Below, piece by piece: positions 26,310-62,880 of a stretch of 64,000 bases of DNA. The translations under genes were made by a program, and so were the position numbers. Location of the stretch: positions 2,086,532-2,150,531 of the forward strand of contig OZ199840.1 of assembly GCA_964304625.1 (NCBI GenBank), read 5' to 3'. A model generated the notes under the pieces. That model searched no databases, had not been told where the DNA came from, and worked only from the letters and a program-made list of their open reading frames with translations. Within the stretch, counting starts at the first letter, position 1; every line of letters starts with the position of its first letter. Origin of the DNA: Kudoa neothunni. Lineage: Eukaryota > Animalia > Cnidaria.

Positions 26310-26772
26310 TTGTGGGAAAACAGTGCATTAAAGTTTATGCCGTACCAAAGGATATTTATTTGAGAAATAAAAATTTGTTTTCTCAAGTTTTCTTCCATCT
26401 CTGTCTTTTTTTATTTATCCTGAAAGGTATGGAAAAAAATTTCTGAGCCGGACCAAAAAATAACGTTTTAAATAGCACTTTGGGAGAGTTTAACTAATTC
26501 GGAATGAAAATCAATATGATACTCACCTTCATTTATTTAGCACTGGTGCTGGGACAAGAAATTGTTAATTAAAATCCAGGATTAATACACTCCTGCACAG
26601 AAATTATCATGATTTAAATTTCGAAATAAAAATCAACAAAGTATGATGATTACAAAAAATTTAGTTTGACTGTTTCTATAAATCAATTTGAAACATAATA
26701 TTTTTTTGAATGATATTAAAAAACATCCCTATGCGAAATCTCCCCAAAAGCAATGCTTGGCAGTTCCGCTAG
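26310..26772 (+). mobile_element. Non-autonomous Helitron-like family, copy A, 3' end
   Basis: Ends ...ccccaaaagcaatgcttggcagttccgCTAG|T (subterminal hairpin plus CTAG); similar to 30459-33000 and 48765-49255 in reverse orientation. Confidence 0.65.
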
Positions 26773-26777
26773 TGTTT

Positions 26778-29700
26778 AATATAATACCTTCTCTATTAAT
26801 TATTAGATGAAGTAACGAATAAATAAAACCTCATATCTAATCCTCTAAAAATTATTACTTGGATGAATGAATTGAAAATTGTATATTATTTTTTATTTAG
26901 CAGTGAGCTTAAAAAACCTTCATGGTGGACGCATAAGAGGTTTAACCATGGATTCACCTTCTATTACAACAGATCGATATCATAGATCTTGTGTATCCCC
27001 CTCCCACGGTGTAATATATAATGTTATTTCTTTGACATTAAGAATTTAAACTTGAGACTTACATTTTTCACTATTTTGCATACCTGATTTGAATTTGGTT
27101 TTCAAGAGATTAATATTTATTCTTATCATAAGCTATAATACAAAATTTATTTGTAAATAAGTGATTGATTAATTTTTTTTGGTATCTTACTTCCAATTTA
27201 TGTGTAAAACTGATTTAGTGATTAGGTTACTTATGAGTTAAGCGTTTCTAATGCTATGAAAGCTCATTATATCTTGATCAGTTAAGAATTGAACTTTCTA
27301 TATATTTGATTAACACAATGATTACAAATACAATAATTATTGCTTTTTTAATAGCCAATACAGGTAATTGAGTTAATCGGTTATTTGATTTAGTTTAAAA
27401 ATTCTAATTTAGTTGATAATGAACATGATTCTATAGCGGTTGAAGTATAATATATAATTTTTCGTTGAAGTCGACGTATTTCATATTGTTTTATTATAGA
27501 TGCGGCGAAATTCTAGATACATTAGGCGGATTGAGAAAACCAGATATGTCCATATTGACGTACATAAGGCTCTAAGCACGGTAAATATTAAATTTACAGG
27601 TTATAAAATGGCAATTTATTCAAGCTCGAACTTGACGATAAAGATCCTACACATTTGGAATCTTTAATAATTAAATCAATGCAAGTACTTGTATTTTTCT
27701 AGGCCCACAACAATTTTATTTTGTTAAGTGTTATTCATGGCACAACATAAAAATAATTATAAAATCGTTCAAACTAAGCAATTTCCAGGAGAAAGAAAAG
27801 AATTTAAACCAAATGATTTTCCAATTTCATAATTTCCTCACTAAATTTTCAATCGATAGGGGATACCATTTAATTTTTGTGTAAGTGATTTTGTTATCAA
27901 TTTGTATTGGTCATTATACGTAAGGTATCAACCGTATATACAAGGTGGTGGTATTATGGGTATAGCACTACCTAATAACATCGGAGTTCCAGCGTTAGGT
28001 GTCGCCATCGTACAGGTATATATTTATTTAAAACAATCTAATGCACTCAATAAATAGATATCTAAGGAAGAAAAACTAGATGTAGAAACAAATCACAGAA
28101 CATTCCAACATGAATTAGGACATATACTTGGGTGTCCTCATGTTCTAAGAGGCGGTAATTCATTATTTGTCACAAAGTTATAATTTATTTTTATGATAAA
28201 GAAAGCCAATGTTTTAATGAAAAATATGGATGTGTCATGATACCAGTTTACCCCGAATGGTACATTGAGGAAATAGTTACATAATAAATTTTTTGCTAGG
28301 CCAGATAGCCTATCGTACCCACCAGCCTTTAGTGTAAAAGGATTCGAATACCTAAAATCACACCTCAGTAAACTTCATACAAATGACTTTTTACTTGTAT
28401 CCAAAAATATTATTAAAATAAAAACATTTTATTTAATGCAATGTAGAATAATGTCAACCACCCTAAATTTCAGTTCTGCGGAAATGGTATGGTAGATCCT
28501 GGGGAAGAATGCGATTGTGGATTCGAAGCTAACTGTATCATCAGTGGTGAAATCAACTGTTGTAATATGACCACCTGCAAATTCAAGCCAAATGCTGAGT
28601 GTTCGAAAGGGGAATGCTGTGAATCTTGCAAAGTATCTGATTTTTCTATTCTCACATTATTATTGGTTCGTGATCTCTACAAAGATAAAAAGTGGTGGTG
28701 TATGTCGACAAGCTGGTGAATGTCACCTGGAAGATACGTGTTCCGGGAAGAGCCCTTTCGTAAGCGATATGGTAATGAGATTTTATTTCTAAAACAGTTT
28801 AGTGCCCCGGAGCGAAAAATAAACCAGACGGAACTCCCTGTCGATCAGGCAGAGTTAAATAAATCAATTTAATATGAGCTATTTAATTAAATATTTCTAT
28901 ACGTAGTCATTTTGTGTCAGTGGAATTTGTCCAGATTCTTATCAACAATGTAGAACAACCCAAAACTCGAGTAAGGAAATGGGTTCAAACTCTGGCGAAA
29001 ATTAAATTTTCGTGCATAGCGAGTGCGAGATACGAACCAAGATGTCAAAAGCTAATCGATAACATGGGAATATATGATTTGACACCACCGGAAGAAAAAT
29101 TCGAGTAATTGTAATATTGATGAGCATTTCAAAATTTTCGTGAGGGGTTCATATTGTGGCGCATTGCCCTGTTTTTCCTCTGATGGAAGAAACATACTTG
29201 GAAAATCATATTACAGTCGAGAATTGGGAGGAAGATGCATGTAATAATTACTTTATCTGGTAGTTTAAACTTATTCAACTCTAGATTGTTGGATAATTAC
29301 ATCAAGGATGATTTTCAAGGACTTATTCCAAACGGTCATAAATGTGGCGAAAATAGAGTGATATATGGTTTTGTTGGTGTTCTGATGTGCAATTTAACGT
29401 AGATGTGCATGAACAATAGATGTATTAATGCCATAGAAAATTTGGAAAAATGTAAAAACATAAGATGTCCTGATGGAATAGTAACGTAGCTAATAATTTC
29501 CGTTTTAATTGAATTAAGATTTGTGTAATGGGCAAATGTGTATCAAAGTACAATGATCTGAGTCCTTGCAAAGATATGGCATGTGGTGCAAATCAAGTAA
29601 ACCATCATATATACGGTTTACTCATTAAAGTTGAAAAAATTTAGTATTGCAATAAAGAAGGAATGTGTGCCTATTATATTACGTAAGGTGCATAATTATA

Positions 29701-30486
29701 TAAAAACTTATATTTGTTTCAGGCCAGAAGACCCTTCATCCGCTCATAAAATTAGTTTTGTTCCTTCAAAATTTTCCAATTCGTAAGATTAATATTCTAA
29801 AGAACAAAAGAGATTTACTTCATTTTTTATAAACATTAAAGTTAAAGTGTATATTTTTAATAGAGTATTACAATGTACTCATTTTAAATATCCTTTTTAA
29901 TCATTATTATTAATTATGTGAATTAATTTTATTTAATATATAAACAATTAACATAAGAGATAATTCATATCCATCGTACTCTAAATATATTTTAGGCCTG
30001 TGTTTTCGGATGAAATTTATATGGGCCATAAATCAAGAAGTAATAATTCTTATAAACAATCACATAATTATTTGTAGATATATTATTTCTGGTTTTACTC
30101 TGCATCTATGGAATTCTCGTTATTGCCATGTAATAACATGATCAACATAAAATTCATTGTGATATCAATATTAATTTAGATTGGTTTACACTTTTGTGTT
30201 TTGGAAGATGAAAGGATACTGAAATAGCGACTAGCTTGAAATGCATAAATATGACTATTCTCTAGATTTTAGATTTATTTTAGTCATTTCGTTAATAAAT
30301 CATTTATTTGTATCATATTCGTAAAATAGCCTTATTTACTCAATTCATAAATAGGGTAGTAAACATGTTTAATTTTAATTAATATATATTATACATGGAT
30401 ACTTAATACAATGATCCATATTAGTTATTGAAATAAAACTTAACAATTATATTATTAACTGGCGTGAATTGCCCAGCGTTGCTTGG
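26778..30486 (+). repeat. 3.7-kb inverted segmental duplication, copy 1 (partner 58868-62589)
   Basis: Reverse-complement identity about 99%; mirrored ORFs such as 28914-29108 vs 60246-60440 (coordinate sum 89354). Confidence 0.97.
26901..29786 (+). CDS. ADAM/reprolysin metalloprotease-disintegrin, copy 1, multi-exon, probably 5'-truncated; no TM segment
   Basis: Prodomain exon ([13 protein letters not shown]), [20 protein letters not shown] (28109-28141), Met-turn [18 protein letters not shown] disintegrin, Cys-rich domain, stop at 29784-29786; introns about 40 nt. Confidence 0.85.
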
Positions 30487-30515
30487 GGAATGATTTCGCA
30501 TAGAGAAGGTTCTTA

Positions 30516-31221
30516 CCGGGTTTTGCATCCAAAGTCGAACTATTTGATAGTCAAAGTCTAAATTTTAATAAACAAATTTAAAGTCATTAAAAAATAGAAA
30601 TTAAAAATATTAGATTTATTGTTAAGGTGTATTACAGCTTAGTTAATGCAATGGAAGAGAGTACGTAACGCAACTAAACAAAAAGTAATAGATAAATTGT
30701 TATTTTACGTTTCAGTTAATTTCTTTCAATATCAAGTAATGCATGACATTTTCCAAGGAAAGTTTCCACATTCTGATAATAATTCTTCAAATTATTGGAA
30801 CTTACAGCATTGGAGGCTTCTTTCATCCTATTGAGGAGATCATCTCTTCCTCTTATAGGGCCGTCGCGCCGAATTTTTGATTTTATCAAGTTGTTCTTCA
30901 CCTCTGAAGTAAGAAAAATGGTTTCTACAACCTCCCTTAGGTGCTTTATGGATTTTTTTCTGAACTTCTATAGTCTTTGATTATTCCACAAAGGGTTAAT
31001 TTGGGAATGTCAAAAGATTCAACAACTTCTCGTTGGCTCTTACCCTTATTTACAATCAAATCTATCACTCTCTCGCGGTTCCTATTCGAATGACTTTGCT
31101 GCTTTGACATTCTAACCAACGTGAGAACAATTCAGTACAACTCGTCCTTAAAAGTTCAATTCGTGACCAAAAAAAGGTCATTTAGAATGTTTAAAGTTCG
31201 ACTTTGGGATGCGAAATCCGG
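30516..31221 (-). mobile_element. Internally deleted Tc1/IS630-like element
   Basis: TA|CCGGGTTTTGCATCCAAAGTCGAACT ... AGTTCGACTTTGGGATGCGAAATCCGG|TA; transposase N- and C-terminal remnants (ORF 30716-30901). Confidence 0.85.
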
Positions 31222-31462
31222 TAATTAGATTCAAAAAATATGTTAATGTTTCGAATTATCCTATAGAAGCTGTCAAACTAATTTTTTTAGAACATAATAC
31301 TTTGTCGATTTTAATTTAGAATTTTAAATCGTGATCACTTCCGTGCAAGAGAGTATCAATCCGGGTTTTTAATTTGCAATTTCCTGCCCCGACACCAAAG
31401 CTAAATAATTTAAGGTTAGTGTAATATTTATTTTCATTCCCAAATTATTTAAACTCTCTTAA

Positions 31463-32344
31463 CCTTCTAAATAGCTGAAACATTTTCACCCTCCAAATAA
31501 AAATGAGGTAGAAATCTACGCCGCCTTTTTATTTGATAGAACTATTTCAAATGAAATTCAGCATTGACTGACAAAATAGGAGTAAAATTCATTGAGTACA
31601 TTTTGAATAATTGGCCAATTATTAAAGTTATATTCTGTGCACGCATGCGCACACATTTATGCTGTTACGTTTCTTTGGAGTATGATTGTTTTTATAGGTG
31701 TATTTCTGAGGTTTTTTAGTTTTAACGTTTAATTCAAGTTTTATAACAGCTGCCAATTAATTTTTCTTATTTTAAACTAAGTAGTGTAATATTGCGTAAA
31801 AAAAACACAAAACGATGGAAAACAGTGCTTATTTCACAACAAGTTATTCCATATGTTTTTAATGCTCTCTACAATACGAAACTAAGAATATTGATCAACA
31901 GTTTCACATATGTTTTAAGATGCTCCCTACAACGTAGAAATAAGCAAACTGGCAAAAAGTCATCGTATTTTGAATAGCTGGTATAAAAATAGTGAGAGAA
32001 TGAGGAGCTATCGTTGTATCCCTGAGAGAACGACATGCTTGTCGACGCTGCGCATGCGGGGGTGACATGGCGTGTATATTGTTTCGTTATTTATTCATTA
32101 TTTACTCAATAGAATTTTCGTAAATTTTTAAAAATCACATGTATCAATATTTTAAATAATTTTAGTCGGAAGGTGTTTCACATTAACTTTTTTGATATAT
32201 GACAAAATTTCAACTCATTTTTCTGAAAGTTTTCATAAAGATAAAAGATTGCAAAAAGTGGAGAGCAGTTATTTTCCATTTATACACTATAATGTTGTTG
32301 GCAAAATTTACTTGTGGTAGAAATCTACCCCCATTTAATTTAAA
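31463..32344. mobile_element. TTAA-inserted MITE (piggyBac-like)
   Basis: Flanked by TTAA (31459 and 32345) at a site uninterrupted in Helitron-like copy C; GGTAGAAATCTAC palindrome near both ends (about 31506 and 32316). Confidence 0.5.
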
Positions 32345-33022
32345 TTAAAGTGCAATCTAATACGTTATTTTTTGGGCGAGGGATTTTTAAAGTCGAATTC
32401 TGGACGGACTCAGAAAATGTGTGCACCGCAAACTTTTCAAGGGATAAAAAATAGAAAAAGTAATCGTGATGAAGAAAACACAAGAAAATTAATTTTTGTT
32501 GCTCAAATGAATATCCTTTGGACCCGCATAAACTTAATGCGCTTTTTTCAACAAACACTGGATTATTTTGTTTCTTTCTTAGTCATTAACACAAAAGTTG
32601 TTTATTGTTACTATTTACGAATTGTTACCACTTATATTTAACAATTTTATATAAACTAACTAAAAATTAACTTTTTACAGATTTCACAAAAATATCTCAT
32701 TTTTTACTATAATAAAAATGCTTTGTGAACATTGAAATGTAGATATTAAAGTAGTAAGATTTATTTTAGTTTATAATTTATTTTATTTAATTTTTTATTA
32801 GAAATTAATAAATTATTAAGGTTTTATTATTAAAATTCAGGAACCTAATTTTTAAACATGATTGTATTAATTTTTTTACCTTGAAATATGTGTAAAACAT
32901 TGAAAAAAAAATTTAACTATATTTTTATTAGTTTATAGGTTTTTTTATACGTCGAATTTCCTAACAAAAAATTCGGAAAAATACACAAAGCGAAAACTCG
33001 CCGGCGCATTTATTTATAATTA

Positions 33023-34388
33023 TAGGGTTTTCCGAGCTTTAATGACAAGGTATTTAAGATAGCTATATAATTAGGTAAAAAATGCGAAAATATTACTTTA
33101 AATTTCGAATGAACAAAAAATAATAATTTGGGGAATTTGAAAAAGATATTCAAGCATTATCGTATAATTTATACTTATTCTAGAATAATTTCTCGTTTCA
33201 AACATTTGCTGATATATCAAAGCATTTTTCGATAATAATTTGAACAGTCGTTGGTGGTAATAACTTTGAAACCATCATCTATTAAATTTAAAAGGTCGCT
33301 TTCATTTCTCGCTTGTCCTCTCACAACATGGTTTTTCCATTTGCTGAAAACATTTTCAATTGGATTCATGAAGGGTGAATACGGAGGTAAATACATCAAC
33401 GTTCGTTGTAACGTTGCTAAAATTTCGCCAAGTCCCCGATAATGATGTATCCCTGCATTATCGAGTATGAAGCATGGATCTTCAATTTCCAAGAAGCGGC
33501 ACAAATCTGCCAACTCAATGAGGAACTCTTTAGAATCTTCGCCATTTGCTGGTCTCCGATTTATTTTATACAGCACCATGCCATACTTATTCATCGTTGC
33601 TGTGACGGATATGTTTCTTGACTTGATGGCTTTTACGTTTACATATGCTGATGCACCAGCAAGCGAACGATTCCGTCTTGTACGTGACGATACAATAAAA
33701 CCAACTTCGACAATAAAAACAAAGTTGTTGCCTTCTGCCTCAAACAATTTTGAATTGAACTCTTGGGTGTACACAAAACGTTTTTTCCGCTGTATCATCA
33801 GAGTTTCTTCGTTCAAGAACAATGATGAGCATTTTTAAAGAATAATGGAATTCTTTAAGGCATCTATTTATTCTGCTAACGCTAACATTCACGCCACATT
33901 CGTCTAATAATTTTTTGACGAAGAGTCTTAAGGGTAATGGTGGGCGTCTTCATCCACCCAACTTCTAATCCTCAACTTTTGATCTTCATTGAGCTTTGAA
34001 GGAAAGTCACCATCCCCTTTTAATGACTTTTCTTTCCCATCGAGAAGGTATGATTTTGCAATTGAAGCAACAGTTTGTCGCCTAATTCCAATATTTTCAG
34101 CGATGACGGCATTGCTGTAACCCAATTCGCATTGATTAGCAATCATTGTCCTATCTTGGTCACTTATTGTTTGTCTCTTAAATTTGGTTTGAGTTGTCAT
34201 GTGAGAATCATCGCTATTATCTGTTTTCAGAGTTCATAAATATTAAACTAACGTGTAATGCTAAATTTTTATCATTCATCTTCTTATTTTTATTCGATTA
34301 ATTTATAATATGAGCTTAATTATAAGCTTAAATTACACAAGTGTCACCATAGCTTGACACGATGTCACTAGAGCTCGGGAAAACCCTA
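33023..34388 (-). mobile_element. Tc1/IS630-like (DD34E) transposon, pseudogenised
   Basis: TA TSDs, TIRs TAGGGTTTTCCGAGCT; HTH ORF 33928-34200; ILDNAGIHH and LPPYSPFMNPIE with 34 residues between D and E; first catalytic D mutated (FIVEVGF). Confidence 0.92.
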
Positions 34389-36648: not shown

Positions 36649-36736
36649 TCGCCACGGTGTCCACAGCATAAAACCATACTACAATATATTGTATCGTTTA
36701 CCTGACTATTACATAAATCGTAGTTTTTGTGTTATC

Positions 36737-36739
<3 letters not shown>

Positions 36740-38629: not shown

Positions 38630-41600
38630 TGGGATTTTATCGTTTTCCTTTTATGTTTTCTATAGAAAATTGTACAGAGATATTGGACAACGTATTATAG
38701 GCAAATTAGATAGAAAATATAAGCTAACTGCTGAATTACTTTGCAGTGTAAGATTTTGTGGATTCCTTCAAATTTTCCGCGTCAAAACTTACATTAGATG
38801 TGGTTGCATTGATCTCTTCATTTTGGTAGATAATATTAAACAACTAGAAAAACAAGATTGTAAAAAAAAACAAATCAATGAATTATCACCGATAGGATTT
38901 TTTTGATAGTACGATTGAATAGACCCAATAATTGTGTTTTTGGTAGGTTTAGTTCATTCTCGATGATTTCCAAAGATTTATGTTGTAAACCCATGGAAAC
39001 TAATATGGCCTAAACAATCCATAGTGGTTAATTGTATGAAAGTGCGTTAAAAACCAGCTGAATCATAGAGCATTTAATTGACGAACCAAATTTTCCTTCA
39101 AAATACAATTGAGCAACTTGATAAAAATTTCAATATTAATACGATAATCAACAAATCAATTACTCTTCGGCACAAGATCCATGATGGCATGAGTGTCAGT
39201 CTGGTTATCGGAATAACTTTCCAAACGTTTAATGTCATATTTGGTGAAAAAGCAAGACAATTCTTGCTCACTAAGATTTACACCTAAGGAAATGAGAGGA
39301 GATAAAATAATTATTATAACAATTATATTTTAAAAAATAACCAAAAAGTTTTTAGAAGAACTCAGAATATTTGTTATTATTTATTGATATACTTGAAGCA
39401 AGTTTAGTCGAAGCCGGTTGCTCAATGTTCGAATTATCATTAAGTTGAGAGTGCTGAGTGGATGAGGTTTTTAAACTATTTGAATCATTCTGCCTATGCA
39501 AGATAGACAGCGCTAATGAGGAACTAAAATTATTGAAGTTGTATCCCAGCAGTTGTATGAAGCGTCGTTTAAAATCTTGAAAATAAAGATTCACAAAATC
39601 ATCATCTCTCACGTTGGTTCTATTATTAAACTGATGCAACATAATGCATGTATTTTCAGCGGTGATATCATTCTAATGACAATAATTATTGGTCGAATAA
39701 AAATTAGGTCATTATAAAACTCACTTTAGTTTGCCTAATATAAACAGGTAGAAACTGATTCTTCTTCCAGAATCTTAAAGCGAAATAAATAAGAACAATT
39801 AACAAAGCAAGACAAGAATAGCTACTTGAAAAGTTCTGGGGTCATGCCAAAAGAAACACCAATATAATTTAAGGAAAATTCATTTGTTGGAGCCTCATCC
39901 AGCTTGACAAATAATGCGCTGCAAGATTTTGAGGATTTCAGCGTTTCAACGACAGCCTCTTCATCAGTCAGATTTGATGATGAGTTGTTATCCTTGTTTT
40001 CGTTAGAATGCGAAGAAACGTTTTGGAAATGGCTTAACAACGTTTTTAGAGCATGTGTTCCGTATCCAAGCTTAAAATATTTTATATTGAAAAAAATAAA
40101 AGTTCCAATCAATTACATTGACATAACTGGGATGTGTCGCAATCCGAACAATTCTAGCCCCCGTTAACTCACCAAAACTGTTGTCACAAAACTATACAAA
40201 TAAATTATAAATTAAGAGGAAATACTTGACCAACTAACTACTATACCTGCTGAGAAATAACCCAAGGTATCAAATCACCATGCAGGCGTTTGCCTTGCGA
40301 TATAGCTTTGTTCATCGATGACTCGGGAATTTTACCCTCAAAACACACTTGAATCACACATAAAATAGTAGGCAATTCTTCGGATTTAACGCAGTTATCA
40401 ATAGGAGGAATCAAACAGAAGAGATGATGCGCTGGAGCGTCTGCCAAAAGTTGGAGATCATTTGGTGTGTTTTTGTAATGTGCTGACACATAAACTGAAA
40501 CCAAGTCTGAGAGAATTCGTTCCGACAACTTGTGATAGGAGAAAAGAGTATCTCTGTTTATATAATATCTGTGTGATAACAAGAATTAATTTTGGTTAAA
40601 ATTGACAAATTTATCGATATTCTTATAGTTATTTGTTGATAAAAAATGAAATGATAGAAATAAATGTCCTAATTTCATCGTTATTCAAAAACTCAAAGTA
40701 TTAATTATTGAATAATTAAAAAATTTCTTTATAAAGAATAGAAAATTAACTACGATAATTTTAGTTGAATTTTTAATGTCAAATTCGCATAATGTATAAA
40801 CAACTATCGTGATCGAAGAGATTTAGTTTAATGAGATTTAATGGCGTTTAAAGATAAAAAATTTGAGAATAAAATTATTTCAATAAATAAAAAAAGACTT
40901 TTTTCATTTTATATTTTATGCTGTAACATAAATTTAAATAAATAAGTAAATCACATTAAGATTATATTTTCTGATTGATTGCACATAAAGAAAGTTTATA
41001 ATAATCTTAGATATTTCAGATAGGTCAAAAATTAAATAGGATATTTTTAAAAATAATATATACAACGAAAAATAATTATTAGAATTCATATTTTAAGAAA
41101 ATTTCGATATATATATTTATATTCGCATTTCTCCAGAATGTACATCAAAACCTTTAATAACTAAAATAAATAAAAAAATATTTTACGTAGATTACGATCA
41201 TTATTAAAGAAAAATAGAATAACTTGAAGAAATAGGCGTAAAAATACTTACAGCTGGCATTTTTCCGGCGTATAACATCCCAAAGACGAAGTAGACACAG
41301 TCTTATCTCCAAACGCGGTATCGTCAAGGCATAATAACTTATTTAACCAACTTTCTACTGGACAACAATTCGCATATCGAACAGATTCGTCAAGTTTGAG
41401 TTCAGTTAAATTTGCAGAAGGTTGCTCCCTTAGTTGTTTCAACAATTTCAGCGACAACGAACGCCCAGTTCCCTCATAGCCATGTGTGGTTGACGCCATA
41501 TAAATGCTAGCATTGTTATCAAGTATTCGTTTAACAGTATTCAAAGGGATAGCAGCAGCTTCATCGACAACCACCACATCGGCAATACTCAACATCTGTT

Positions 41601-44600
41601 GACTATTCGGTTCCATATACTATTAGATCATCGAAATTATACGCGAAAAAAAATTTAATTAGATTCGATTCGATTACCTGGACACATTGTCGATGTTCTC
41701 TCAAGATATTAATACGAGATATAAGGCTCAAATTATTGGTTGTAGTGGTGGAGATACATTCGTAATCGGTGTGTTCCTGAAAAACAATTCATGTTGAAAA
41801 TAATAAACAAACTGTTGCTGATAAAATTTGATACTTGAAAATCAAGAAGTTTAAAACCCTTAATAACAAACTCAAAAAGGGTCTGAACATTTTCCAAATC
41901 TGGAGAAGTGATGTATATGTTGGACGCTCTAAAAAAAGTAAGTGTTATTAATTAAAAAAGCACAATCACTCTCACCCATATGATACAGCTGCAGCCACCG
42001 CCAACCCCAAACATGCTGATTTACCGCGCCCTCTGCCGGCAGTAAGTGATATAATTTGTCGCGAATTAATTTTTGGAAGCGATTCCACGAATGCGAGCAA
42101 CGCTTTTGCTTGATCTAATGTTTTGCACGCGTTTACCAACATTCCGAATGGAACCACATCCATAAATGATTGTTTTATTCCGGTTAATTCACTTTCATTA
42201 TCTATTGCTTGTTGTTTGTTTTTCTAAATTAATATCCCAATATTAATTATAATAATGTTGATGTTATCGTTATAGCGAAATAATAAACAACTAAATAAAA
42301 CATGTGATAGATATCAACAATTTTCATTCGCTGCTAGCCTTTAAAAAATAATTTCCACAAATATCCTTCCCAAGTGCTAAAGTTTTTCAACAACAAAAAT
42401 TTTTATTTTTTGTAACTTAAATACATAAAAAGGATCCGGATGTTAACATTTAAATCAAACGTGTAGATTACATTTTCAATTTTTAAATAAAGTCGCCAAC
42501 CTATTTTTCACACTTTTTGTAAAGTTACTTAATTATAATTGTAAATATTCCTATTTCTTATACAGTAAGGCCCTCGCAATATCGACGTCTTGTGCGCACA
42601 CACACACAAACCTAATATTAAAAAAATTCGAAATAGCTATTTTAGTTTTATTGTTTTGCATTCTAAACACTTCATATGAACGACCCCTAACAGGATACAG
42701 AGAGAGCATGGCTGAAGGTCTTTATAACTGTGTTTATTGACACTTGGTTGTTTCGTTGAAATTTTTCTTGTTTTTGAAATCAATGTGGCAGTCCTAATTA
42801 CAACCCCAATTTCTTAAGTTTCTTATGCCATAGCTCTCAGATTAATTATTATGAATATTTTCAGCCTCTTCCATATTATCAACATCATGTAAAATAATCG
42901 AAACAACTCCAGTACTGTGAATAATTACATACTTTTCATAATTAGAACCAATTAATTATTTATTATTATAAATACTAAATATTTTTAATCGAACAAAACC
43001 ACCCATTACTAAAATAAAATTTTGTGATTTTAATCATGTTTGCTCAAGAACAGACTTCTCTTTAATTTCATTTTTCAACACTTTTTTCGCTACCCTACTA
43101 ACAATCCAATTACACAACTCACTCTCAATCTGGGTGTATTTTCCATGAGAAATTCGTATTCAGTCATTCGAAATGTTTGCAAAAACCAAATAACTTTTTT
43201 TAATAGAATCACAGAGAGAAGGGAATGACCTATTCTCATTTCTCGACAGCTAAAATCTAAAATCTAGTCAATAAGTCAATATTTGGTAGGTTAAAATGCT
43301 TCAATATCATCATACTGGCACCCGGTATCGTCTTAATCTGGTCGTAATATTGAATTTATGGACGTTTTATTCGTTGATTCTCTGAGATATTCCTAACATT
43401 ATTTGTTAATTGGCAAAATATAGGATTAATCAGATTATTTCATCAAAAAAGCCACCAATCTCCATAATTTTGAATTTTATTGAATAAAAAATTAAATATA
43501 GTGTTTTCCGACTTTCTGGCAGCTAATTGATGTTATTTGTTGAATTATTGATGTTGACAAATACTGAAAAATCACTAATTACGATATATCGGGACCTTAC
43601 TGCATAAACAAATATATTCAACTTTAAGGTGATTATAAAAACCCTCATATACACCCAACAAAATCACGTCCCCATGCTGGGGGTCATTTTGACCTCCAGC
43701 TTTTCTGAGAACACTCTTAGTTTCTTTTACAAATGGCTATCAGATATAATAAAGGTGTATTTATTGTTATAGAAGACTTTAAAATGTTTTGATCAATGCA
43801 AAATAAAATATAGTTATGGCCAATTATAGTCGTAAACGTGGCACAATGGATTCTGAATAAGATCCCCATTTTGAAGAAACTAATTTTGAATTTAGTAATC
43901 GAATAATTGAGAACCCAGCATCGGATTACCATTATTCCTATAATGGAATTGATCTATTCCAGCGAAAAAATTTACGTGGTAACATTTAAGGAGGGAGAAA
44001 ATGGCCTGAATAATCAAAACGCATTCGAACATTTTAAAACAGAAAATCTCCTTCAAAAATAATGCATTAAATAATTGCGATACTTCACTTATAGTGTTCT
44101 CGAATTTTCTGGAATATGAAATTTCAGATTTTATTGTTGAATATATAAATAAATTCATAAAGAATGAGTTGCCGTAGCAAAGTTCAATTACAAAAGATGA
44201 CTGAATGATGTACATTGGTTGTTATTCACTTATAAGAATAATGAAAGGGAAAATATGGATATGCACTATTACATATATTTATAATCTCGGGTTGAGCGAA
44301 TTTATAGGTACATGCACAATTTTTAAAATACATTACCAGACAAGGTGGTAGTCTTCGAATGTGAGCTAAATGTCGACACATCTTATGGTACAACCGTGTA
44401 CCATAAATTATTGCTAAAATCAATCTTATCATGAAAGTCTTGATAATCTGGTTTCGATAGGGAATTCAAAATATTCCTTCATCACACAAATTATGTATTA
44501 TTTAAAATAGTTGTTTAAAAAATTTTCTATTTCCAAAAGAAGCAAATTTTTCGTGTATTCCAATTTACAGTATTACAATATTACAGTCTACGCCATGTGT

Positions 44601-46277
44601 TTAGATAAGAGAGTAATTTCCTCATATTTTTTAAGTATACTTTAATAACATTAGTTTTTCCATCAAGACAAACGCTCGTTTTTAAAATATAACATCAATT
44701 ACATAAATACTATTCGGGGTTATTGAAAAAATGATAGAGGACAAAATGACCCCCACCCACCGTGCATATGAAGGTTAAATAATTGGCGCAAAATATATAG
44801 TTGAAACCAGGTGATTTGTCATTTTGCACACTTTTTCGAAAAATCATTTAATCAATGTATCATTGTTCCCAAAACATTAGAAATATGATCACAAAAAATT
44901 AAAAATATAATAACATAAGAAGAATATTAAATTCGAAAATAATCTGAAAATTTTCCATTGAAAAACTCCAAGGTTGCTACTTTGAAACATTTTAACCTAT
45001 CAAATACAGCAACTCTACAAGGTTTCTCCCAAAAAGAATTAAATTATATCGCTAGCTTAATAAAGTTTAGATCGTTTTCGAATTGGAAATCTCAATATAC
45101 GATATATTGAGTCAAAATATGACAATCCAAAACAATTGATTTTTTTAAAAATTAAAATTAAGTATCATTTGGTATCTTTTCTGCTGTAGAATTTTTATTC
45201 ATTTATATTGTTTAAAAAAAATAAAAAATTATTATGCACTCGCGCGGAATTTGCAAATTTGGTTGAAAATCTATTGCCCCTTGTATAATAAAACTTATAT
45301 GACCCTTATGTTGGTTAAATTGCATTATTATCTTATCTTACCGTAGAGTTAATGCTAGTTGAAGAGGAAGTTGAGGAAATGTGTGGATCACTTAGTGGTA
45401 ATACTTTAAGTTGATCATCCAACACAAGACAATTTCCACATTCGGAAAGAGATAGAAATAGCCTAAAAATGTATTCTAGCTTAGTGGGAAGAGTTGGTAA
45501 TTAATTTTCGAAATTACCGCTCATTAAACCTCGGAGTTATGTTGGCATGGGATTCGGTCCGGTACCTTTTGTGGACATCCTTTCATTATTGTCAATCAAC
45601 TCAAAATATTCCATAGACATAAAATCAGTATTACCATAGTCAATGTGTATATTTGTTTGAGGTTATCCACATTGTTCAACAACACACAGACGCAACCACC
45701 TCCTTCTACGGTTTCGATTGTTCTCGCCAAAATATTTGGGGTCAAGGCTTCAAAATCCTGAAAAACAACAAAATAAAAAGACTAGATTAACACATATTTA
45801 TATACTTGTAGTACAGCCATTCCAAATGTATTTCCAAGGATTTTGTGAGTTTCTTTGTAGTAGGTGAAACGAATTTTGGTTGACATCACAAACACATCAA
45901 AATGATTCTCTTCATTGATATTTTTGATACCACTGTTTAGTTGTTTCTTTAACTTTTTCATTTTTTTTCATTCGATGGCTAGGTTAATCAATCAACAAAT
46001 ATTCACATCATCATATGGATCCGAAACTTACCAACTAAACCCCAACTCATGTTTATAACACCAAAGTACAGAAGGTCTGGCTTTTATCTGTGCTTTCGAA
46101 AGCATATGATGCAATGTAACCACCTACATGAAATTTTATTGCTTTGTGGTTGGTTTTGATTTTCCTAACCTGATCACGAGCTTTTTCGCCAATAAGAAAG
46201 AAAATGCATCTTTGGTTGAACTTCACTGCATCTTCTATTGTGGACATAATCCGCATATCAAGTTTCTTTAGTACCAT
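38630..46277 (-). CDS. NAT10: RNA cytidine acetyltransferase NAT10/KRE33, multi-exon; 3' end approximate
   Basis: MVLKKLDMRI...GEKARDQ, TAGRGRGKSACLG, VVDEAAAIPL, GYEGTGRSLSLKL, SAHYKNTPNDLQLLADAPAH, GARIVRIATHP, GLQHKSLEIIENELNLP. Confidence 0.95.
43642..44774. mobile_element. Degenerate piggyBac-like element inside a NAT10 intron
   Basis: CCCTCATATACAC / GTGCATATGAAGG|TTAA TIRs; GGGGTCATTTTGACC and GGACAAAATGACCCC subterminal motifs. Confidence 0.65.
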
Positions 46278-46430
46278 AGCGCGTCGTTCAATGTGGCCTT
46301 AAAATAACGACTGCGCAATGTCGGTCCACATGCGCGCTTAGAAGTGATAACTTTTTGATAAGTATTCAATGAGAAAAATAAACATTATTATATAATTTAT
46401 TTATTGATGACTTTGAATAGACTGTATTAA

Positions 46431-53230: not shown

Positions 53231-53881
53231 TTAATATCGATAGAATAGCCTATCTAACTGTTATATTTTTCAGAAATATTTTTTATCATTGGATTACATT
53301 CAAGCAATTATTAATCGATCGATTTTTATCCAAATCTTAAGGTAAGTCGGCATTAGCAGTAATAATTAAATATAATCAAAACTACTGACACCGTAGGTAT
53401 TAGATGTATTTGTGAAAATAGCCACCTTCTTTAAACATTTAGATTCAACAGATGATAGATGGAATAAACTACTCTAAAGTCTTTAAGTGTCCCCAAATTA
53501 AACGTTGTTATCAAACGTCACACCCATAATTTTAAAAATACGTGGATCTGATGCAATATAGGCCCCTAATCCGCCATATGCATTTATCGGATTATCATAT
53601 AAAAAAGGATTACGGTACATGACACCAGTTGCTCGTGCTTGAAAGAGTCATATCCTTTTATTTTACAATAAATAATAAAATATAAAAATATTCCAGAGAT
53701 TTGCATGATTCTTGCGCCTCCATTGGAATTCAAATAAAAACTCATCTATGACACTTTGTACAATTTCTTTGCTATCATTGGTAGATGATGTTCGGTTTCT
53801 TTGAGAAATTTTATATTTTATTGCAGCATCTCCAGGATAGAAAATATTTTATAATTTCTTTACAGGAGAAATAATTTTTTA

Positions 53882-54891: not shown

Positions 54892-55006
54892 TTAATAGGA
54901 AAGACGGGAAGCCGCACGTATGGGATTAGGGCACCTATATGCAAGGTCAGCCAAATCGCTGATCCCAAATTTTCCGGATAACCGAGGTTCGATTGTGTAT
55001 AGAAAA

Positions 55007-58000
55007 TAGGGGTTAAGATCGGTTTCGGTTTTAAAATCTATTTTTTAATTGTTATAATTTAGCTTCTATTATCAGTTGATGCTGAATTTTAAACAAAGAA
55101 TCACTAAAATAAGTAATCAATCACATTTTTTTACATATTTTTAGTAATAGTAAAGTATGCGGAACCTAAAAAATATCTCCTTATACATATTCTTTCGCAT
55201 TTCTTTTTTCACGATTCTTGATAATAAAATAAAATAATATGAAATGCAAAAATTTAGCTGAAAATAATAACTTCAAAATTTTGAGAATTATTCATCCGAA
55301 TGTGGTGGTCGGATACACGTGTAATCTCTATCTTTTTTTCAACAAACATTGAATTTTTATGTTTCTATCTTAGTTGTTAACTCAAAAGTTATTTATTATT
55401 ACTATTTAGATTTTTTGCTTTTGATAGCTAACAATTTTATAAACTAACTTGGAGAATAAACTATTTGCAAATTTCACAAAAATATTTCATTTTTCGCTAA
55501 GATAATACTTTATGAACTTTCAAATATCGATGTCAATGTAGTAAGATTTGTTTTAGTTTATAATTTTTTAGATTAAATTTTTTTAAAGAAATTAAGAATT
55601 TATTCAATTTTTATTACTAAAATTCAGAAACCTAAACTTTAAAAATGATGATACTAACTTGGTTTACCCTGCAGTGTTTGTATAATATTGGAAAAAAATT
55701 ACTAAGCGATATTTTTATTGTTTTTTAATTTTTTTTATATGTCAAAGTTTGGTAACAAATAATTCTCAAAAATATGCGATTGGAGAATATTACGAGATAT
55801 AAAAATATATTTATAGAAAATATCAATTCTTTGAAAGGCATAATAACAACATTTTTACGTTTGTAGAATGGTAGACTAAACACACACGTAAAATTTCCTC
55901 TAATAAAGTAATAACATCATATAATCGACCTCAAGATATTTACCTTTTAAAATTAAATGCTTATCTTTAATATAGTGTTGATTTATTTGAAAAAAATTTA
56001 TCAGTTCTGTTGGAGATTATAACTAATAAATAAATTAACGGTGGCTTTCATCGCCTTGTTAAGTAAGCTCTATATTGTTTTACTGCCGGACCTGAACGAG
56101 CCGCGTGTGTGTTTATTCTAAGTCTGAGTGAGCCTGAAAGAAAACACAACAAATTATAAGAAAATGCATTTTGAGAGCACGTGGTTAAGTTCTTGTTTAA
56201 AACCATTCATATTTAAAAGCCAATAAAAACATGTATAGATAAATTCAACATCGTAAAAATTTTCTTTTATACGATAAAAAATACGAGATGAAACCAATTT
56301 ATGAATGATTTCCAAAACGAGTCAGAGAATAATTCAATGTTTGTTGAAAGAAGGTGGAGGTTACACGTGTATCCGATTGCGTTCGGATGAAAAATTCTTA
56401 TAATTTTAAAGTTATTATTTTCAGCTGAATTTTTTACCTCCGTATTCTTTCATCTTATTATCAAGAATCGTGAAAAATGTGCGCAAGAGGTCGTTTTTTA
56501 GGTGCCGCATACTTTACTATTACTAAAAATATGTAAAAATGTGATTGATGCAGTACTTATGTGCAAAAAAAGTTCGACCAGTACGTTGCATGCACACTCT
56601 AAATTACATGGGATTGATTCGAAAAATAAGTTGTTGCAATCGCTGACATTTTTCTATTGAAATTTAGAAACATACACATAAAACCCGTTATTGAAAGTTT
56701 TGCGAGAAAAAGTCTTCGGGATTTTAACCTAGATAGTGATATTGCCAAAATTGCAAAAAGTACCACCATAAGACGATTGTTGAAAAAAGTTCATAATAAA
56801 GAAATCCCAGTATCCTATGATGAAATTTTCGATTCTTGCGTAAGAGTAGAAGCATCTATAGTGAGCAAGATAAAAAAAAATTTTCCAGTGCCAATTCAAG
56901 ACCTGCGCTCTGTTTTGATGAGTGGACTTCAAGGTCTAAAAACGATTTCTTAATATCCAAGCATATTTCGAAGACAACAACATTTCGCTCGGGGTTATTA
57001 GAGTCACCGAAAGATGTACAGGCATAGAATTGGCGTCTTTAATCAAAAACTAACTATCGAAATTTGGCGTTACGTCCTTATTTATGTATACCGATGGAGC
57101 GTCAAACAGGGCAAAATGCACTTTTGAATTGGGTTTTCAGCAGATAAAGTGCATGCTACACGGAATAAACTTAGGTAATTAAATTATTAATTGACAACCT
57201 ACATTAACGTATAGCCAGCAGCCAACAAATATCGAAACTATAACTGACGAGCCGGAGTTTGATGAATAAGAATTTGTCCTTGTGCCAAGTTTCTTAGATA
57301 TTTTATTTCGGGTTGGGTCAGTTGTCAGTTACTTTTCAAGATCTAGATCTGGATTGACCTCCGACGCATTGAGAAAATCATGTGAACGAAAAGACATTAA
57401 ATACCTATCACTGAATATCGATTGAATGACACGATGGTCAAGTTGTTACGATATATTAGTTAAATTTATGAAATGTTTGAGGTTATCGAAGGCGCTTACA
57501 TGATTTTGGAAAGGATTTACTGACCAATAAAGATGAAATTATTTTAGTCAATGTAATTATCTATAAAGATATTGTAAAAATGACTGAATGTTAAGGAATT
57601 AACATCATGTCTGGAAATTGTGCATCGCGCCGTTCTCAAACTTTCAGAGTCACAAATAAATCTTGCACAATGTGACTTCAAACTAACCAACACAGTTGAG
57701 TATCTCTCACTTATTGACGGAACAATTTCAGAAAATTTAAAAATGAAATTTATCGAACGCTGCTTTGAACGACGCACCATTTGGTCTGACATATTTATGT
57801 TTTTGAGCTTCGATTCAAACATTTGTGAAAAGAGTTTATTCTACAGAAGACCGTCAAATTTTGAGCTACAAGAAGCGATTGACTTCATTGAACCGAATGA
57901 TCAAATCCACAACTATGAACCTTCGGAAGCTGAAACAGATTTAGACGATTTGATAAATTACGCGGCCAGACCGAAAAAGTTAAAATATTGTTCGGATTCC

Positions 58001-58552
58001 AACGAAATTACCAATTTTATTAATCACGGTGTGATGTCAGATCGTTTAGAGAGGGTTCGTAAAACTCTCTCTAATATATAAGGCCTACAAGTATTGACTC
58101 AGAAAGATGTTTTTCCCTATGAAACATGAAACCGTGTTATTTCCCCCTTGAGAACAAAACTGAGTGATTCGAAACTTGAGACAATTGTTTTTATTTATGA
58201 AAATAGAAATAACTAAATTGAAATTTGAATTATAGAATTTTTTATAGTGCGTTTGAAAAAATTTTAGCTTAAAATATATATAGTCGTTTTTAAGGTAATT
58301 ACAAAAAACGTTAAATAATAAAATTAATTATAACAGTAAAAGTTTACATAAAAATTAATTCTATTCTAAAATAATCCAAAATTTAGATTGAAAGAGTATG
58401 TTTAAACAAAGAGTGACTAAAATAAGATTTCATTCTATCACATATTTAAATTTTTTTGCTTGAACACAAATTTACAATGATAATTGAACAAATTATTTAC
58501 AAAACCGAAAACCGTTTTAGAAATAATCGAAACCGAACCGTCTTAACTCCTA
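55007..58552 (+). mobile_element. hAT (Ac/ZBED-like) element with pseudogenised transposase (about 56570-58216)
   Basis: TIRs TAGGGGTTAAGA.CGGTT / AACCGTCTTAACTCCTA, subterminal AAACCG repeats, decayed 8-bp TSD atagaaaa / ttacaaaa; FDEWTS, TDGASN, CMLH, TRWSS. Confidence 0.85.
55110..56560. mobile_element. Nested element with about 200-bp imperfect inverted repeats (55110-55330 / 56356-56560) enclosing a Helitron-like family fragment
   Basis: tcaatcacatt...gtaaagtatgcgg...cacgattcttgataataa...ggatacacgtgtaa is mirrored on the other side. Confidence 0.7.
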
Positions 58553-58867
58553 TTACAAAATACAAACTTTGGAATTGCCCAAGATTGTGTGTTCCAAGAA
58601 ACGATGAAATTTCAAAAAAGTTATGGAATTGTTAAAAGTCTAATCTATTAGGAATAGTAGGATTTGTGTCTGAATAGAGATGATTTAAATTTCAAAATAA
58701 TAGAACAATTTTTAGTTGTATTTTTTTAGCGTTTTAAGTTTTCATCGAAATCAACCATCGGGTGACCGAGAGGATTAGCGCCACCTGGTGCGAAGGTTAT
58801 GGGCGATAAATCTGTATATAGATGTTATATTGAAAAATTTTTTCCTTAATTAAATATTTCCAACACT

Positions 58868-61800
58868 CCAAGCAACGCTGGGCAATTCACGCCAGTTAAT
58901 AATATAATTGTTAAGTTTTATTTCAATAACTAATATGGATCATTGTATTAAGTATCCATGTATAATATATATTAATTAAAATTAAACATGTTTACTACCC
59001 TATTTATGAATTGAGTAAATAAGGCTATTTTACGAATATGATACAAATAAATGATTTATTAACGAAATGACTAAAATAAATCTAAAATCTAGAGAATAGT
59101 CATATTTATGCATTTCAAGCTAGTCGCTATTTCAGTATCCTTTCATCTTCCAAAACACAAAAGTGTAAACCAATCTAAATTAATATTGATATCACAATGA
59201 ATTTTATGTTGATCATGTTATTACATGGCAATAACGAGAATTCCATAGATGCAGAGTAAAACCAGAAATAATATATCTACAAATAATTATGTGATTGTTT
59301 ATAAGAATTATTACTTCTTGATTTATGGCCCATATAAATTTCATCCGAAAACACAGGCCTAAAATATATTTAGAGTACGATGGATATGAATTATCTCTTA
59401 TGTTAATTGTTTATATATTAAATAAAATTAATTCACATAATTAATAATAATGATTAAAAAGGATATTTAAAATGAGTACATTGTAATACTCTATTAAAAA
59501 TATACACTTTAACTTTAATGTTTATAAAAAATGAAGTAAATCTCTTTTGTTCTTTAGAATATTAATCTTACGAATTGGAAAATTTTGAAGGAACAAAACT
59601 AATTTTATGAGCGGATGAAGGGTCTTCTGGCCTGAAACAAATATAAGTTTTTATATAATTATGCACCTTACGTAATATAATAGGCACACATTCCTTCTTT
59701 ATTGCAATACTAAATTTTTTCAACTTTAATGAGTAAACCGTATATATGATGGTTTACTTGATTTGCACCACATGCCATATCTTTGCAAGGACTCAGATCA
59801 TTGTACTTTGATACACATTTGCCCATTACACAAATCTTAATTCAATTAAAACGGAAATTATTAGCTACGTTACTATTCCATCAGGACATCTTATGTTTTT
59901 ACATTTTTCCAAATTTTCTATGGCATTAATACATCTATTGTTCATGCACATCTACGTTAAATTGCACATCAGAACACCAACAAAACCATATATCACTCTA
60001 TTTTCGCCACATTTATGACCGTTTGGAATAAGTCCTTGAAAATCATCCTTGATGTAATTATCCAACAATCTAGAGTTGAATAAGTTTAAACTACCAGATA
60101 AAGTAATTATTACATGCATCTTCCTCCCAATTCTCGACTGTAATATGATTTTCCAATTATGTTTTTTCCGTCAGAGGAAAAACAGGGCAATGCGCCACAA
60201 TATGAACCCCTCACGAAAATTTTGAAATGCTCATCAATATTATAATTACTCGAATTTTTCTTCCGGTGGTGTCAAATCATATATTCCCATGTTATCGATT
60301 AGCTTTTGACATCTTGGTTCGTATCTCGCACTCGCTATGCACGAAAATTTAATTTTCGCCAGAGTTTGAACCCATTTCCTTACTCGAGTTTTGGGTTGTT
60401 CTACATTGTTGATAAGAATCTGGACAAATTCCACTGACACAAAATGACTACGTATAGAAATATTTAATTAAATAGCTCATATTAAATTGATTTATTTAAC
60501 TCTGCCTGATCGACAGGGAGTTCCGTCTGGTTTATTTTTCGCTCCGGGGCACTAAACTGTTTTAGAAATAAAATCTCATTACCATATCGCTTACGAAAGG
60601 GCTCTTCCCGGAACACGTATCTTCCAGGTGACATTCACCAGCTTGTCGACATACACCACCACTTTTTATCTTTGTAGAGATCACGAACCAATAATAATGT
60701 GAGAATAGAAAAATCAGATACTTTGCAAGATTCACAGCATTCCCCTTTCGAACACTCAGCATTTGGCTTGAATTTGCAGGTGGTCATATTACAACAGTTG
60801 ATTTCACCACTGATGATACAGTTAGCTTCGAATCCACAATCGCATTCTTCCCCAGGATCTACCATACCATTTCCGCAGAACTGAAATTGAGGGTGGTTGA
60901 CATTATTCTACATTGCATTAAATAAAATGTTTTTATTTTAATAATATTTTTGGATACAAGTAAAAAGTCATTTGTATGAAGTTTACTGAGGTGTGATTTT
61001 AGGTATTCGAATCCTTTTACACTAAAGGCTGGTGGGTACGATAGGCTATCTGGCCTAGCAAAAAATTTATTATGTAACTATTTCCTCAATGTACCATTCG
61101 GCGCAAACTGGTATCATGACACATCCATATTTTTCATTAAAACATTGGCTTTCTTTATCATAAAAATAAATTATAACTTTGTGACAAATAATGAATTACC
61201 GCCTCCTAGAACATGAGGACACCCAAGCATATGTCCTAATTCATGTTGGAATGTTCTGTGATTTGTTTCTACATCTATTTTTTCTTCCTTAGATATCTAT
61301 TTATTGAGTGCATTAGATTGTTTTAAATAAATATATACCTGTACGATGGCGACACCTAACGCTGGAACTCCGATGTTATTAGGTAGTGCTATACCCATAA
61401 TACCACCACCTTGTATATACGGTTGATACCTTACGTATAATGACCAATACAAATTGATAACAAAATCACTTACACAAAAATTAAATGGTATCCCCTATCG
61501 ATTGAAAATTTAGTGAGGAAATTATGAAATTGGAAAATCATTTGGTTTAAATTCTTTTCTTTCTCCTGGAAATTGCTTAGTTTGAACGATTTTATAATTA
61601 TTTTTATGTTGTGCCATGAATAACACTTAACAAAATAAAATTGTTGTGGGCCTAGAAAAATACAAGTACTTGCATTGATTTAATTATTAAAGATTCCAAA
61701 TGTGTAGGATCTCTATCGTCAAGTTCGAGCTTGAATAAATTGCCATTTTATAACCTGTAAATTTAATATTTACCGTGCTTAGAGCCTTATGTACGTCAAT

Positions 61801-62589
61801 ATGGACATATCTGGTTTTCTCAATCCGCCTAATGTATCTAGAATTTCGCCGCATCTATAATAAAACAATATGAAATACGTCGACTTCAACGAAAAATTAT
61901 ATATTATACTTCAACCGCTATAGAATCATGTTCATTATCAACTAAATTAGAATTTTTAAACTAAATCAAATAACCGATTAACTCAATTACCTGTATTGGC
62001 TATTAAAAAAGCAATAATTATTGTATTTGTAATCATTGCGTCAATCAAATATATATATATATATATATAGAAAGTTCAATTCTTAACTGATAAAGATATA
62101 ATGAGCTTTCATAGCATTAGAAACGCTTAACTCAGAGTAATCTAATCACTAAATCAGTTTTACACATAAATTGGAAGTAAGATACCAAAAAAAATTAATC
62201 AATCACTTATTTACAAATAAATTTTGTATTATAGTTTATGATAAGAATAAATATTAATCTCTTGAAAACCAAATTCAAATCAGATATGTAAAATAGTGAA
62301 AAATGTAAGTCTCAAGTTTAAATTCTTAATGTCAAAGAAATAACATTATATATTACACCGTGGGAGGGGGATACACAAGATCTATGATATCGATCTGTTG
62401 TAATAGAAGGTGAATCCATGGTTAAACCTCTTATGCGTCCACCATGAAGGTTTATTAAGCTCACTGCTAAATAAAAAATAATATACAATTTTCAACTCAT
62501 TCATCCAAGTAATAATTTTTAGAGGATTAGATATGAGGTTTTATTTATTCGTTACTTCATCTAATAATTAATAGAGAAGGTATTATATT
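58868..62589 (-). repeat. 3.7-kb inverted segmental duplication, copy 2
   Basis: Reverse complement of 26778-30486 with a few substitutions and an expanded (TA)n at about 62050-62069. Confidence 0.97.
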
Positions 62590-62880
62590 CAACATTAGAT
62601 CAATTTTTTATATAATAATCTCTAAAAAATGCCCTAAGAGATTCTTTGATTTTAATTATTGTGAATGTAAGAGAGAGACACCACAAAGCAACAATAACAA
62701 CAACAATAATAATTGCGCCCCCTCAGCTAATGATTTGTTAATCTCCTGTACTAATCTACCAACATAACAGTAATTACAGGAGAATTTGATTTAATAAGTT
62801 ATTAATTAAAATGCACATTTTGTCTATGTGTCGTTCCTGTCTCAAGATTGCGTGATTTTATCTTCAATGTGTTGAGCACT
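59568..62880 (-). CDS. ADAM/reprolysin metalloprotease-disintegrin, copy 2, with additional upstream prodomain sequence; 5' end not resolved
   Basis: [11 protein letters not shown] at 61213-61245; same exons as copy 1 plus [20 protein letters not shown] (about 62725-62787), resembling the ADAM prodomain CYYxGxV...S motif. Confidence 0.85.

Follow-up and report, generated by a model that had tools for sequence, protein, structure and literature searches.

An inverted duplication of an ADAM-like protease gene bounded by Helitron-like ends, probably with inversion of the intervening 28 kb, in Kudoa neothunni

Inversions of chromosomal segments can leave duplicated sequence at their ends; in Drosophila, 17 of 29 inversions carry inverted duplications of unique sequence, up to ~1.9 kb in length (PMC1885836, Ranz et al. 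2007). Transposon ends have their own recognisable junctions, and the canonical 3′ junction of a Helitron is CTAG followed by T (PMC4778049). The locus described here lies in a window of 64,000 nucleotides of Kudoa neothunni (contig OZ199840.1, positions 2,086,532 to 2,150,531; the whole stretch that was analysed, to which all positions below refer) and combines the two. A 3.7-kb unit, predicted to hold a gene for a secreted ADAM-like metalloprotease, stands in two inverted copies at the ends of a 28.4-kb segment, and every breakpoint that can be read is at the 3′ end of a Helitron-like element.

The region is AT-rich (~30% G+C) and belongs to contig C3 of a four-contig, single-haplotype assembly of 40.26 Mb. 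Comparison of the window with itself and base-by-base alignment showed 26769-30486 to be the reverse complement of 58868-62598, the two forming one long inverted repeat. The alignment contains 23 substitutions and two indels, one of 1 nt and one of 14 nt of (TA)n, and with gaps left aside the arms are 99.4% identical; the match is firm from 26778 onwards, with mismatches at 26772 and 26777. An initial annotation of the stretch had described ~99% inverted repeats at 26778-30486 and 58868-62589, and a layout of left flank (L), repeat (X), middle segment (M), inverted repeat (X′) and right flank (R); both descriptions hold, with two inverted copies at the two ends of one segment. Only these two near-identical copies of the repeat occur in the 40-Mb assembly, the closest other sequence being a 70% paralogue on contig C1, so that the duplicated unit would have been unique in the ancestor and not a dispersed repeat. 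The locus is a young inverted segmental duplication (~0.6% diverged), the copies of the 3.7-kb unit lying head to head around 28.4 kb.

The substitutions are unevenly placed along the arms. The outer 530 bp carry ten of them (P=7e-4), whereas the inner 1289 bp (29198-30486 and 58868-60156) are free of substitutions (P=5.6e-5 under a uniform rate). Since the inner 1.3 kb is identical and the outer arm end is ~2% diverged, the arms appear to have exchanged sequence, and the identity of the inner 1289 bp presumably reflects gene conversion between them. Arms of such size could also flip M by recombination.

The junctions are defined by three Helitron-like elements. L terminates in element H1, 1.07 kb of sequence from an abundant repeat, family B, and a second copy of family B in the opposite orientation (H2) lies across the inner end of X. 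The X/M boundary (30486/30487) is 28 nt inside the H2 terminus. Since the corresponding point is uninterrupted in other copies of family B, this junction is native, in keeping with the earlier observation that a Helitron-like body carries on past 30486. Of the two junctions at which a copy would run on into its ancestral neighbour, X/M is native, and X′/R is crossed by no feature.

The M/X′ junction has a different composition. Here M finishes with 314 bp (58554-58867) that belong not to family B but to a short family, D, and form the body of element H3. At least 10 family-D copies have their own D-type terminus, CCGAGCGTAGCCGGGTATTACGGCTAG, directly after the same body end, and a family-D copy on contig C2 aligns across M/X′, where identity falls from 89% in the body to ~61-68% over the final 28 nt. 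The B-type 28-mer is present in none of the family-D copies with a D-type terminus, and the exact 28-mer, CCAAGCAACGCTGGGCAATTCACGCCAG, occurs genome-wide only at X and X′. Because the 28-mer is unique and the family-D copies keep their own terminus, M/X′ is best read as the H2 terminus grafted on the H3 body exactly where the two elements correspond. Staggered breaks at random sites with end joining are disfavoured, as a hit on the homologous position at -28 would be a coincidence of ~1 in thousands, and the sequence of the junction points instead to a template switch or a homology-guided joining between Helitron ends.

At the L/X junction, the CTAG of H1 ends at 26772 and the core of X begins at 26773 with T. 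The inverted 6-mer AGTGTT/AACACT, which the initial annotation had found shared between the L/X and M/X′ junctions, is present and extends further, the reverse complement of the M end (AGTGTTGGAAATATT) matching the outer end of X′ at 11 of 15 bases (P ~6e-4 per register). With a similarity of 6-11 nt at L/X, end joining at unrelated sequences is encountered neither there nor at M/X′. R begins with A, not with the T expected of a native Helitron flank. The coordinates of these features are given in Table 1.

Table 1. Repeat copies, flanks, Helitron-like elements and gene copies at the inverted duplication.
Feature	Position	Strand	Description
X, left copy	26773..30486	+	X-core 26773-30458 plus 28 bp of H2 terminus
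X′, right copy	58868..62594	-	Reverse complement of X
M, middle segment	30487..58867		28,381 bp; mostly transposons plus the whole NAT10 gene
R, right outer flank	62599..64000		54 unique bp, miniature inverted-repeat transposable element (MITE) 62653-62774, 227 unique bp, multicopy element from 63002
H1, family B, 5′-truncated	25713..26772	+	3′ end ...GCAGTTCCGCTAG stops at 26772, at L/X
H2, family B	30459..31700	-	3′ terminus 30459-30486; body crosses X/M; interrupted by terminal inverted repeat (TIR) element at ~30506-31225
H3, family D body	58554..58867	+	~313 bp, at least 20 copies; ends at M/X′
Chimeric terminus	58868..58895	+	H2 28-mer (B type, ending CCAG) on family-D body, at homologous position
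AGTGTT	26771..26776	+	At L/X; inverted partner AACACT 58862-58867; ~6e-4 per fixed register
ADAM-like gene, copy 1	27318..29786	+	Signal-like start, zinc motif, disintegrin exon; wholly inside X
ADAM-like gene, copy 2	59568..62036	-	Same open exon pieces as copy 1

The assignment of these elements follows from their 3′ ends and their number in the genome. An alignment of family-B copies gives the 3′ terminus consensus CCAAGCAACGCTGGGCAGTTC(G/C)CGCTAG, and a T follows the terminus (CTAG, CTAA or CCAG) in 14 of 15 elements. The window contains four family-B termini, with 0 expected; genome-wide there are 63 B-type termini within three mismatches and 20 of D type, and 0 in the reversed-pattern controls. 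Matches to Helitron_like_N (Rep) number at least 46 in the genome, and at two loci a Rep domain lies ~4 kb upstream of a D-type terminus, on the same strand. Family D starts with T(T/A)ACAAAATAC, while the 5′ end of H1 is missing. Searches for hairpins in the termini showed that they fold no better than shuffled sequence (z -0.9 to +0.6). H1, H2 and H3 are probably elements of the Helitron type and are called Helitron-like, given the folding of their termini and 5′ ends that are not definable.

A further Helitron-like element, F (25225-25713), ends in ...GGAGCGTAGTTTGCCCATCCCTG exactly at the start of H1, which makes a second junction at a Helitron 3′ end, and a 5′ part present in other family-B copies is missing from H1. 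The 14 nt just outside the H2 terminus (30445-30458, TTAATAATATAATT) also stand beside a B-type terminus at C1:14040827-14040868; the sharing of this 14-nt sequence could mean either a subfamily whose end lies further out than CTAG or a flank that was carried along.

The ADAM-like gene was delimited with the help of the C1 paralogue, whose homology, by alignment, is limited to 27215-29805, all within the repeat. Copy 1 and the paralogue have in common the ATG at 27318, which opens a signal-like peptide, and a promoter block ~100 bp upstream; the final open piece stops at 29786. As both the paralogue homology and the span from ATG to end lie inside the repeat, the gene should be complete in both copies, and the duplicated unit is predicted to carry the whole gene of a secreted ADAM-like metalloprotease together with ~545 bp of sequence before it and ~670 bp after it. 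Exons of this gene and of NAT10 (see below) were searched singly, with no joined protein model. The disintegrin domain (28447-28716) matched Pfam above the cut-off (E=3.8e-10), the zinc motif (HExxHxxGxxH) lies in the exon at 28058-28180, and the Reprolysin matches are weak per exon. The lengths of the exon-level open reading frames (ORFs) are equal in X and X′, and the two gene copies differ mostly by non-synonymous changes, with an I/M difference in the zinc motif, HELGH(I/M)LG (28126; 61228 in copy 2), and Cys versus Tyr in the Cys-rich part at 29111 (60243 in copy 2). When the 23 substitutions are polarised by the paralogue, X agrees with it at 8 sites and X′ at 4, with changes on both copies. 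Exact-product look-ups with one ADAM exon and one NAT10 exon found nothing on record.

The right flank is of a different nature from what had been supposed. According to the initial annotation, copy 2 continues outwards into further ADAM prodomain sequence, and this was its main argument for the polarity of the event. R (62599-64000) contains no ADAM sequence, and its ten ORF pieces have no Pfam match; it is made up of the MITE, which has many genome copies at ~90%, and of the multicopy element. Because the ADAM-like gene lies inside the repeat and R consists of transposons, the argument falls.

Read support was taken from Logan (de Bruijn) contigs of two runs of one sample, probably the assembled one, over the region 25700-31600. 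Only four runs, all of this single sample, contain the stretch; two of them were examined, as contigs and not as raw reads. The L/X junction is bridged in both contig sets, from 26683 to 27077 or 27275, with the L-side bases at 26772 and 26777. A contig over X passes 30486 for 61 nt, AGTGTTGGAAATATTTAATTAAGG, which is the reverse complement of the M end, so that M/X′ is bridged as well. A lack of reads across 26772/26778 or 58867/58868 had been proposed as the mark of a misassembly, and read depth as a further check; both junctions are bridged, and word depth is 13.5-15.5 over X versus 3.9-6 in the unique flanks, a ratio of 2-3x. Both sets of alleles are present in the reads (at 26871, A in the contig of one run and G in that of the other). 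Two Illumina raw-read runs from 2026 with the same organism label (50 Gb each) gave 0 of 13 million reads each on 5.9 kb, and the label evidently covers samples without this genome.

An inversion with duplication, in whatever version, in which X′/R is original and L once adjoined the opposite end of M, is the probable origin of the arrangement. It is favoured by the match of the reverse complement of the M end to outer X′ at 11 of 15 positions, and the present L/X differs from the predicted ancestral junction at 3 of 25 bases, which is counted on the same side. The mismatches at 26772 and 26777 also fit, since 26771-26776 would come from L and M, not from X′, as does the A at the start of R, where a native Helitron flank should start with T. 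The graft at -28 implies that H3 would have kept its own terminus at the time of the event, and the 11/15 similarity that the M end served as a template beside L. Serial template-switch repair starting from a tail-to-tail pair of H1 and H3 would satisfy both.

For the more specific course, a template-switch inversion of M plus duplication at Helitron ends, the chances are judged to be even. The ancestor would have had the order L (with H1), H3 terminus, M reversed, H2 terminus, core of X′ and R, and a single ADAM gene. Where the Helitron tails face each other, a break or stalled fork may have been repaired by template switching or joining guided by homology or microhomology. The new strand would have entered the far end of the core of X′ in inverted orientation, via the AGTGTT/TGTTG similarity, and then copied back through M, leaving the H3 body for the homologous H2 terminus. 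The outcome would be an inverted M and an inverted duplicate of the ADAM gene, and later gene conversion would have made the inner 1.3 kb of the arms identical.

Several observations count against this reconstruction. No crossing of X/M or X′/R was found among the contig matches listed, and all supporting reads come from one sample, probably the assembled one. Because M sits between 3.7-kb inverted repeats, both of its orientations share the junction words and are indistinguishable by them; reads longer than ~1.3-3.7 kb are needed to fix its orientation. No independent evidence makes X′/R ancestral, the gene lying inside the repeat and R being made of transposons. A block on the R side, 4-5 kb further right, is colinear with the sequence upstream of the C1 paralogue and was considered as evidence of synteny, but was rejected as a transposon with at least 148 candidate copies, and with it the synteny argument collapsed. 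H3's own terminus was not found within -10 to +74 kb (up to 7 mismatches), nor were tail-to-tail terminus pairs found elsewhere in the genome. As the termini fold no better than shuffled sequence, they lend no support to a story of hairpin stalling, and the search for an error-rich new copy by means of the paralogue was uninformative (8 versus 4 sites), with no sign of error-prone synthesis. The polarity of the outer junctions is therefore suggested by weak, indirect arguments, and the sequence by itself does not suffice to prove a flip of M.

The same junctions could have come about without any inversion, which is considered unlikely. X would be the original, with the tails of H1 and H2 facing each other on either side of it, and M would always have had its present orientation. 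A strand on H3 would switch at -28 to the H2 terminus, copy the gene backwards as far as the palindromic CTAG of H1, then return to the end of H3 and run into R, so that the 27-nt terminus of H3 is replaced by 3.7 kb. This takes a single event, places both ends of the copied piece on terminus coordinates (-28 and 0), explains both the graft and the stop of X′ at CTAG, and gives X-core the initial T that a native H1 flank should have. It sits poorly with the A at the start of R, given the T after 14 of 15 termini. Two of the first 9 nt of the arms are mismatched, which is unlikely for a copy where the local divergence is 2%, and the resemblance of the M end to outer X′ (11/15) would be pure coincidence. 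A still lower probability is given to the scheme of the initial annotation, in which two staggered pairs of breaks (6 nt and 3.7 kb) at arbitrary sites were followed by fill-in and non-homologous end joining, with an ancestral junction ...TTTCCAACACT/AGCGGAACTGCC and no role for Helitron ends. The layout and the inverted 6-mer do fit a staggered-break scheme (PMC1885836), and T follows the CTAG of H1 in the junction that it predicts. On the other hand, H3 would have to be truncated at -28 beforehand and H2 broken independently at the same -28 (~1 in thousands), the 3.7-kb duplication is ~2x the largest reported (~1.9 kb, PMC1885836), and the polarity argument from the prodomain fails. What remains of that reconstruction is the duplication with its layout, the inverted 6-mer and the native state of 30486/30487; the prodomain polarity is lost, and random staggered breaks give way to homologous Helitron termini at M/X′. 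Its predicted junction, ...CCAACACT/AGCGGAAC..., when searched for in the assembly with up to 3 mismatches, matched the present L/X only, and probably leaves out the 27-nt terminus borne by all other family-D copies.

Equally improbable is a course in two steps, in which the inverted duplicate arose first and recombination between the arms then inverted M once or repeatedly, leaving its orientation interconvertible or unresolved. Arms of 3.7 kb at 99.4% identity are an ample substrate for recombination, the identity of the inner 1289 bp (P=5.6e-5) shows that they exchange sequence, and all junction words would be the same in either orientation; a second orientation is missing from the reads, although these data are unable to show one. 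That the repeat is a false join of two haplotypes or of a fold-back chimeric read is very improbable. Near-identical inverted repeats are a classic pattern of misassembly, and the dependence on one sample also speaks for it, but the flanks of the two copies are wholly different on both sides, contigs built independently from the k-mers of two runs bridge both L/X and M/X′, X has 2-3x the depth of unique flanks with both allele sets present, and breakpoints at Helitron ends have a biological logic that an artefact would not give. Hardly credible, finally, is a bypass of the Helitron end, in which a terminus mutated to CCAG allowed read-through into the ADAM gene and its transport to a new site. 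The terminus common to both copies does end in CCAG and not CTAG, and there are documented cases of Helitron end bypass and of 3′ transduction (PMC4778049, PMC4224331). The copies, however, share 28 nt of Helitron sequence below bodies that differ (family B versus family D), there are only two of them in the genome, and nothing like a terminus is present at the outer end, where X′ is followed by A. Helitron capture or 3′ transduction was excluded as the origin on the grounds of the different bodies upstream, the 28 nt in common and the A flank.

Besides transposons, M contains NAT10 (RNA cytidine acetyltransferase), an essential gene, which lies wholly inside the segment on the minus strand and extends over ~7 kb (39355-46298). 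Its exons match GNAT_acetyltr_2 (E=8e-37) and NAT10_TcmA_helicase (E=8e-32), with an N-terminal piece at 46056-46298, and no breakpoint cuts it. To the left of the repeat are an exon of a UBE2G-like E2 enzyme (17439-17750, plus strand) and a Gypsy-type long terminal repeat (LTR) retrotransposon (4610-8869), with LTRs at 4610-4747 and 8723-8869 that are 92.5% identical, a gag-like ORF and an open pol of 1027 aa (protease, reverse transcriptase, RNase H and integrase). The best match of the E2 among 5.8 billion proteins was 85% over the conserved core, with molluscs and a mite among the named matches, so the protein set holds no close relative. The nearest conserved host gene rightward is an LCAT/phospholipase-like gene with exons at 70254-71561 on the minus strand (…SHSMG…), which would serve as a synteny marker. 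Scans of the window for Rfam families, tRNAs and tandem repeats found nothing.

The rearrangement is real but fairly ordinary, and belongs to a known class of event; its unusual point is the presence of Helitron 3′ ends of two families at the junctions. One event made a second intact gene for a secreted protease and probably flipped 28 kb with NAT10. The short conserved ends of two Helitron families would have acted as joining points, linking the Helitron load of the genome to the duplication of a whole gene by a route that differs from capture and transposition. If the same signature recurs at other duplication junctions in this genome, this could be a general route of gene-family expansion there. 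A bolder idea, put forward with considerable doubt, is that Helitron 3′ ends are preferred points of breakage or switching, possibly cut by the Rep/helicase, with the ends of different copies used together. If true, a rolling-circle 'alternative transposition' would yield duplicates of entire host genes and an inversion of the DNA separating them. To our knowledge, alternative transposition is known for Ac/Ds and P elements, and nothing comparable has been described for Helitrons.

Among the described systems, Helitron end bypass and composite Helitrons (PMC4778049, PMC4224331) resemble the locus in that a Helitron with a degenerate CTAG (here CCAG) ends immediately before a gene, whose far side is bounded by the end of a neighbouring Helitron. 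They differ from it in that here the body is not common to both copies, the unit is not amplified and a canonical insertion junction is lacking, and for these reasons the duplication does not appear to be a product of transposition. In alternative transposition of maize Ac/Ds (PMC8225341) the ends of different copies are also used together, and inversion occurs with changes in the flanks, but the elements are cut-and-paste hAT transposons with target-site duplications, whereas nothing at the present locus points to a transposase. Galileo-type ectopic inversion in Drosophila buzzatii (PMC4168063) similarly leaves a chimeric transposon at the breakpoint, with exchange at homologous positions. 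Here, in contrast, the reciprocal chimera is absent, since H2 keeps an identical terminus, the homology is ~28 nt at ~61% identity, and a simple exchange does not duplicate a unique flank of 3.7 kb; ectopic recombination between inverted transposons was accordingly rejected, there being one chimera only and 3.7 kb of unique DNA duplicated.

The staggered-break inversions of Drosophila share with this locus the L-X-M-X′-R order, a duplicated piece that is ancestrally unique, gene-bearing sequence, and, at X/M, the continuation of a copy into its old neighbour. The duplication here is longer (3.7 kb versus a maximum of ~1.9 kb) and contains a complete gene, its ancestral state is inferred from the present sequence and not observed, and one junction lies at homologous positions of transposon ends, which suggests homology-guided joining instead of plain end joining. 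Fork stalling and template switching or microhomology-mediated break-induced replication (FoSTeS/MMBIR), combined with transposon gap filling (PMC8277862), likewise gives an inverted copy in cis nearby with breakpoints near transposon ends, and corresponding microhomology is present here as CC at M/X′ and TGTT(G)/AGTGTT at L/X, leaving one unexplained base, 26777. In that system, TIR elements capture filler DNA; in K. neothunni the ends are Helitron-like, and the result is the inverted duplication of a whole gene, probably together with an inversion.

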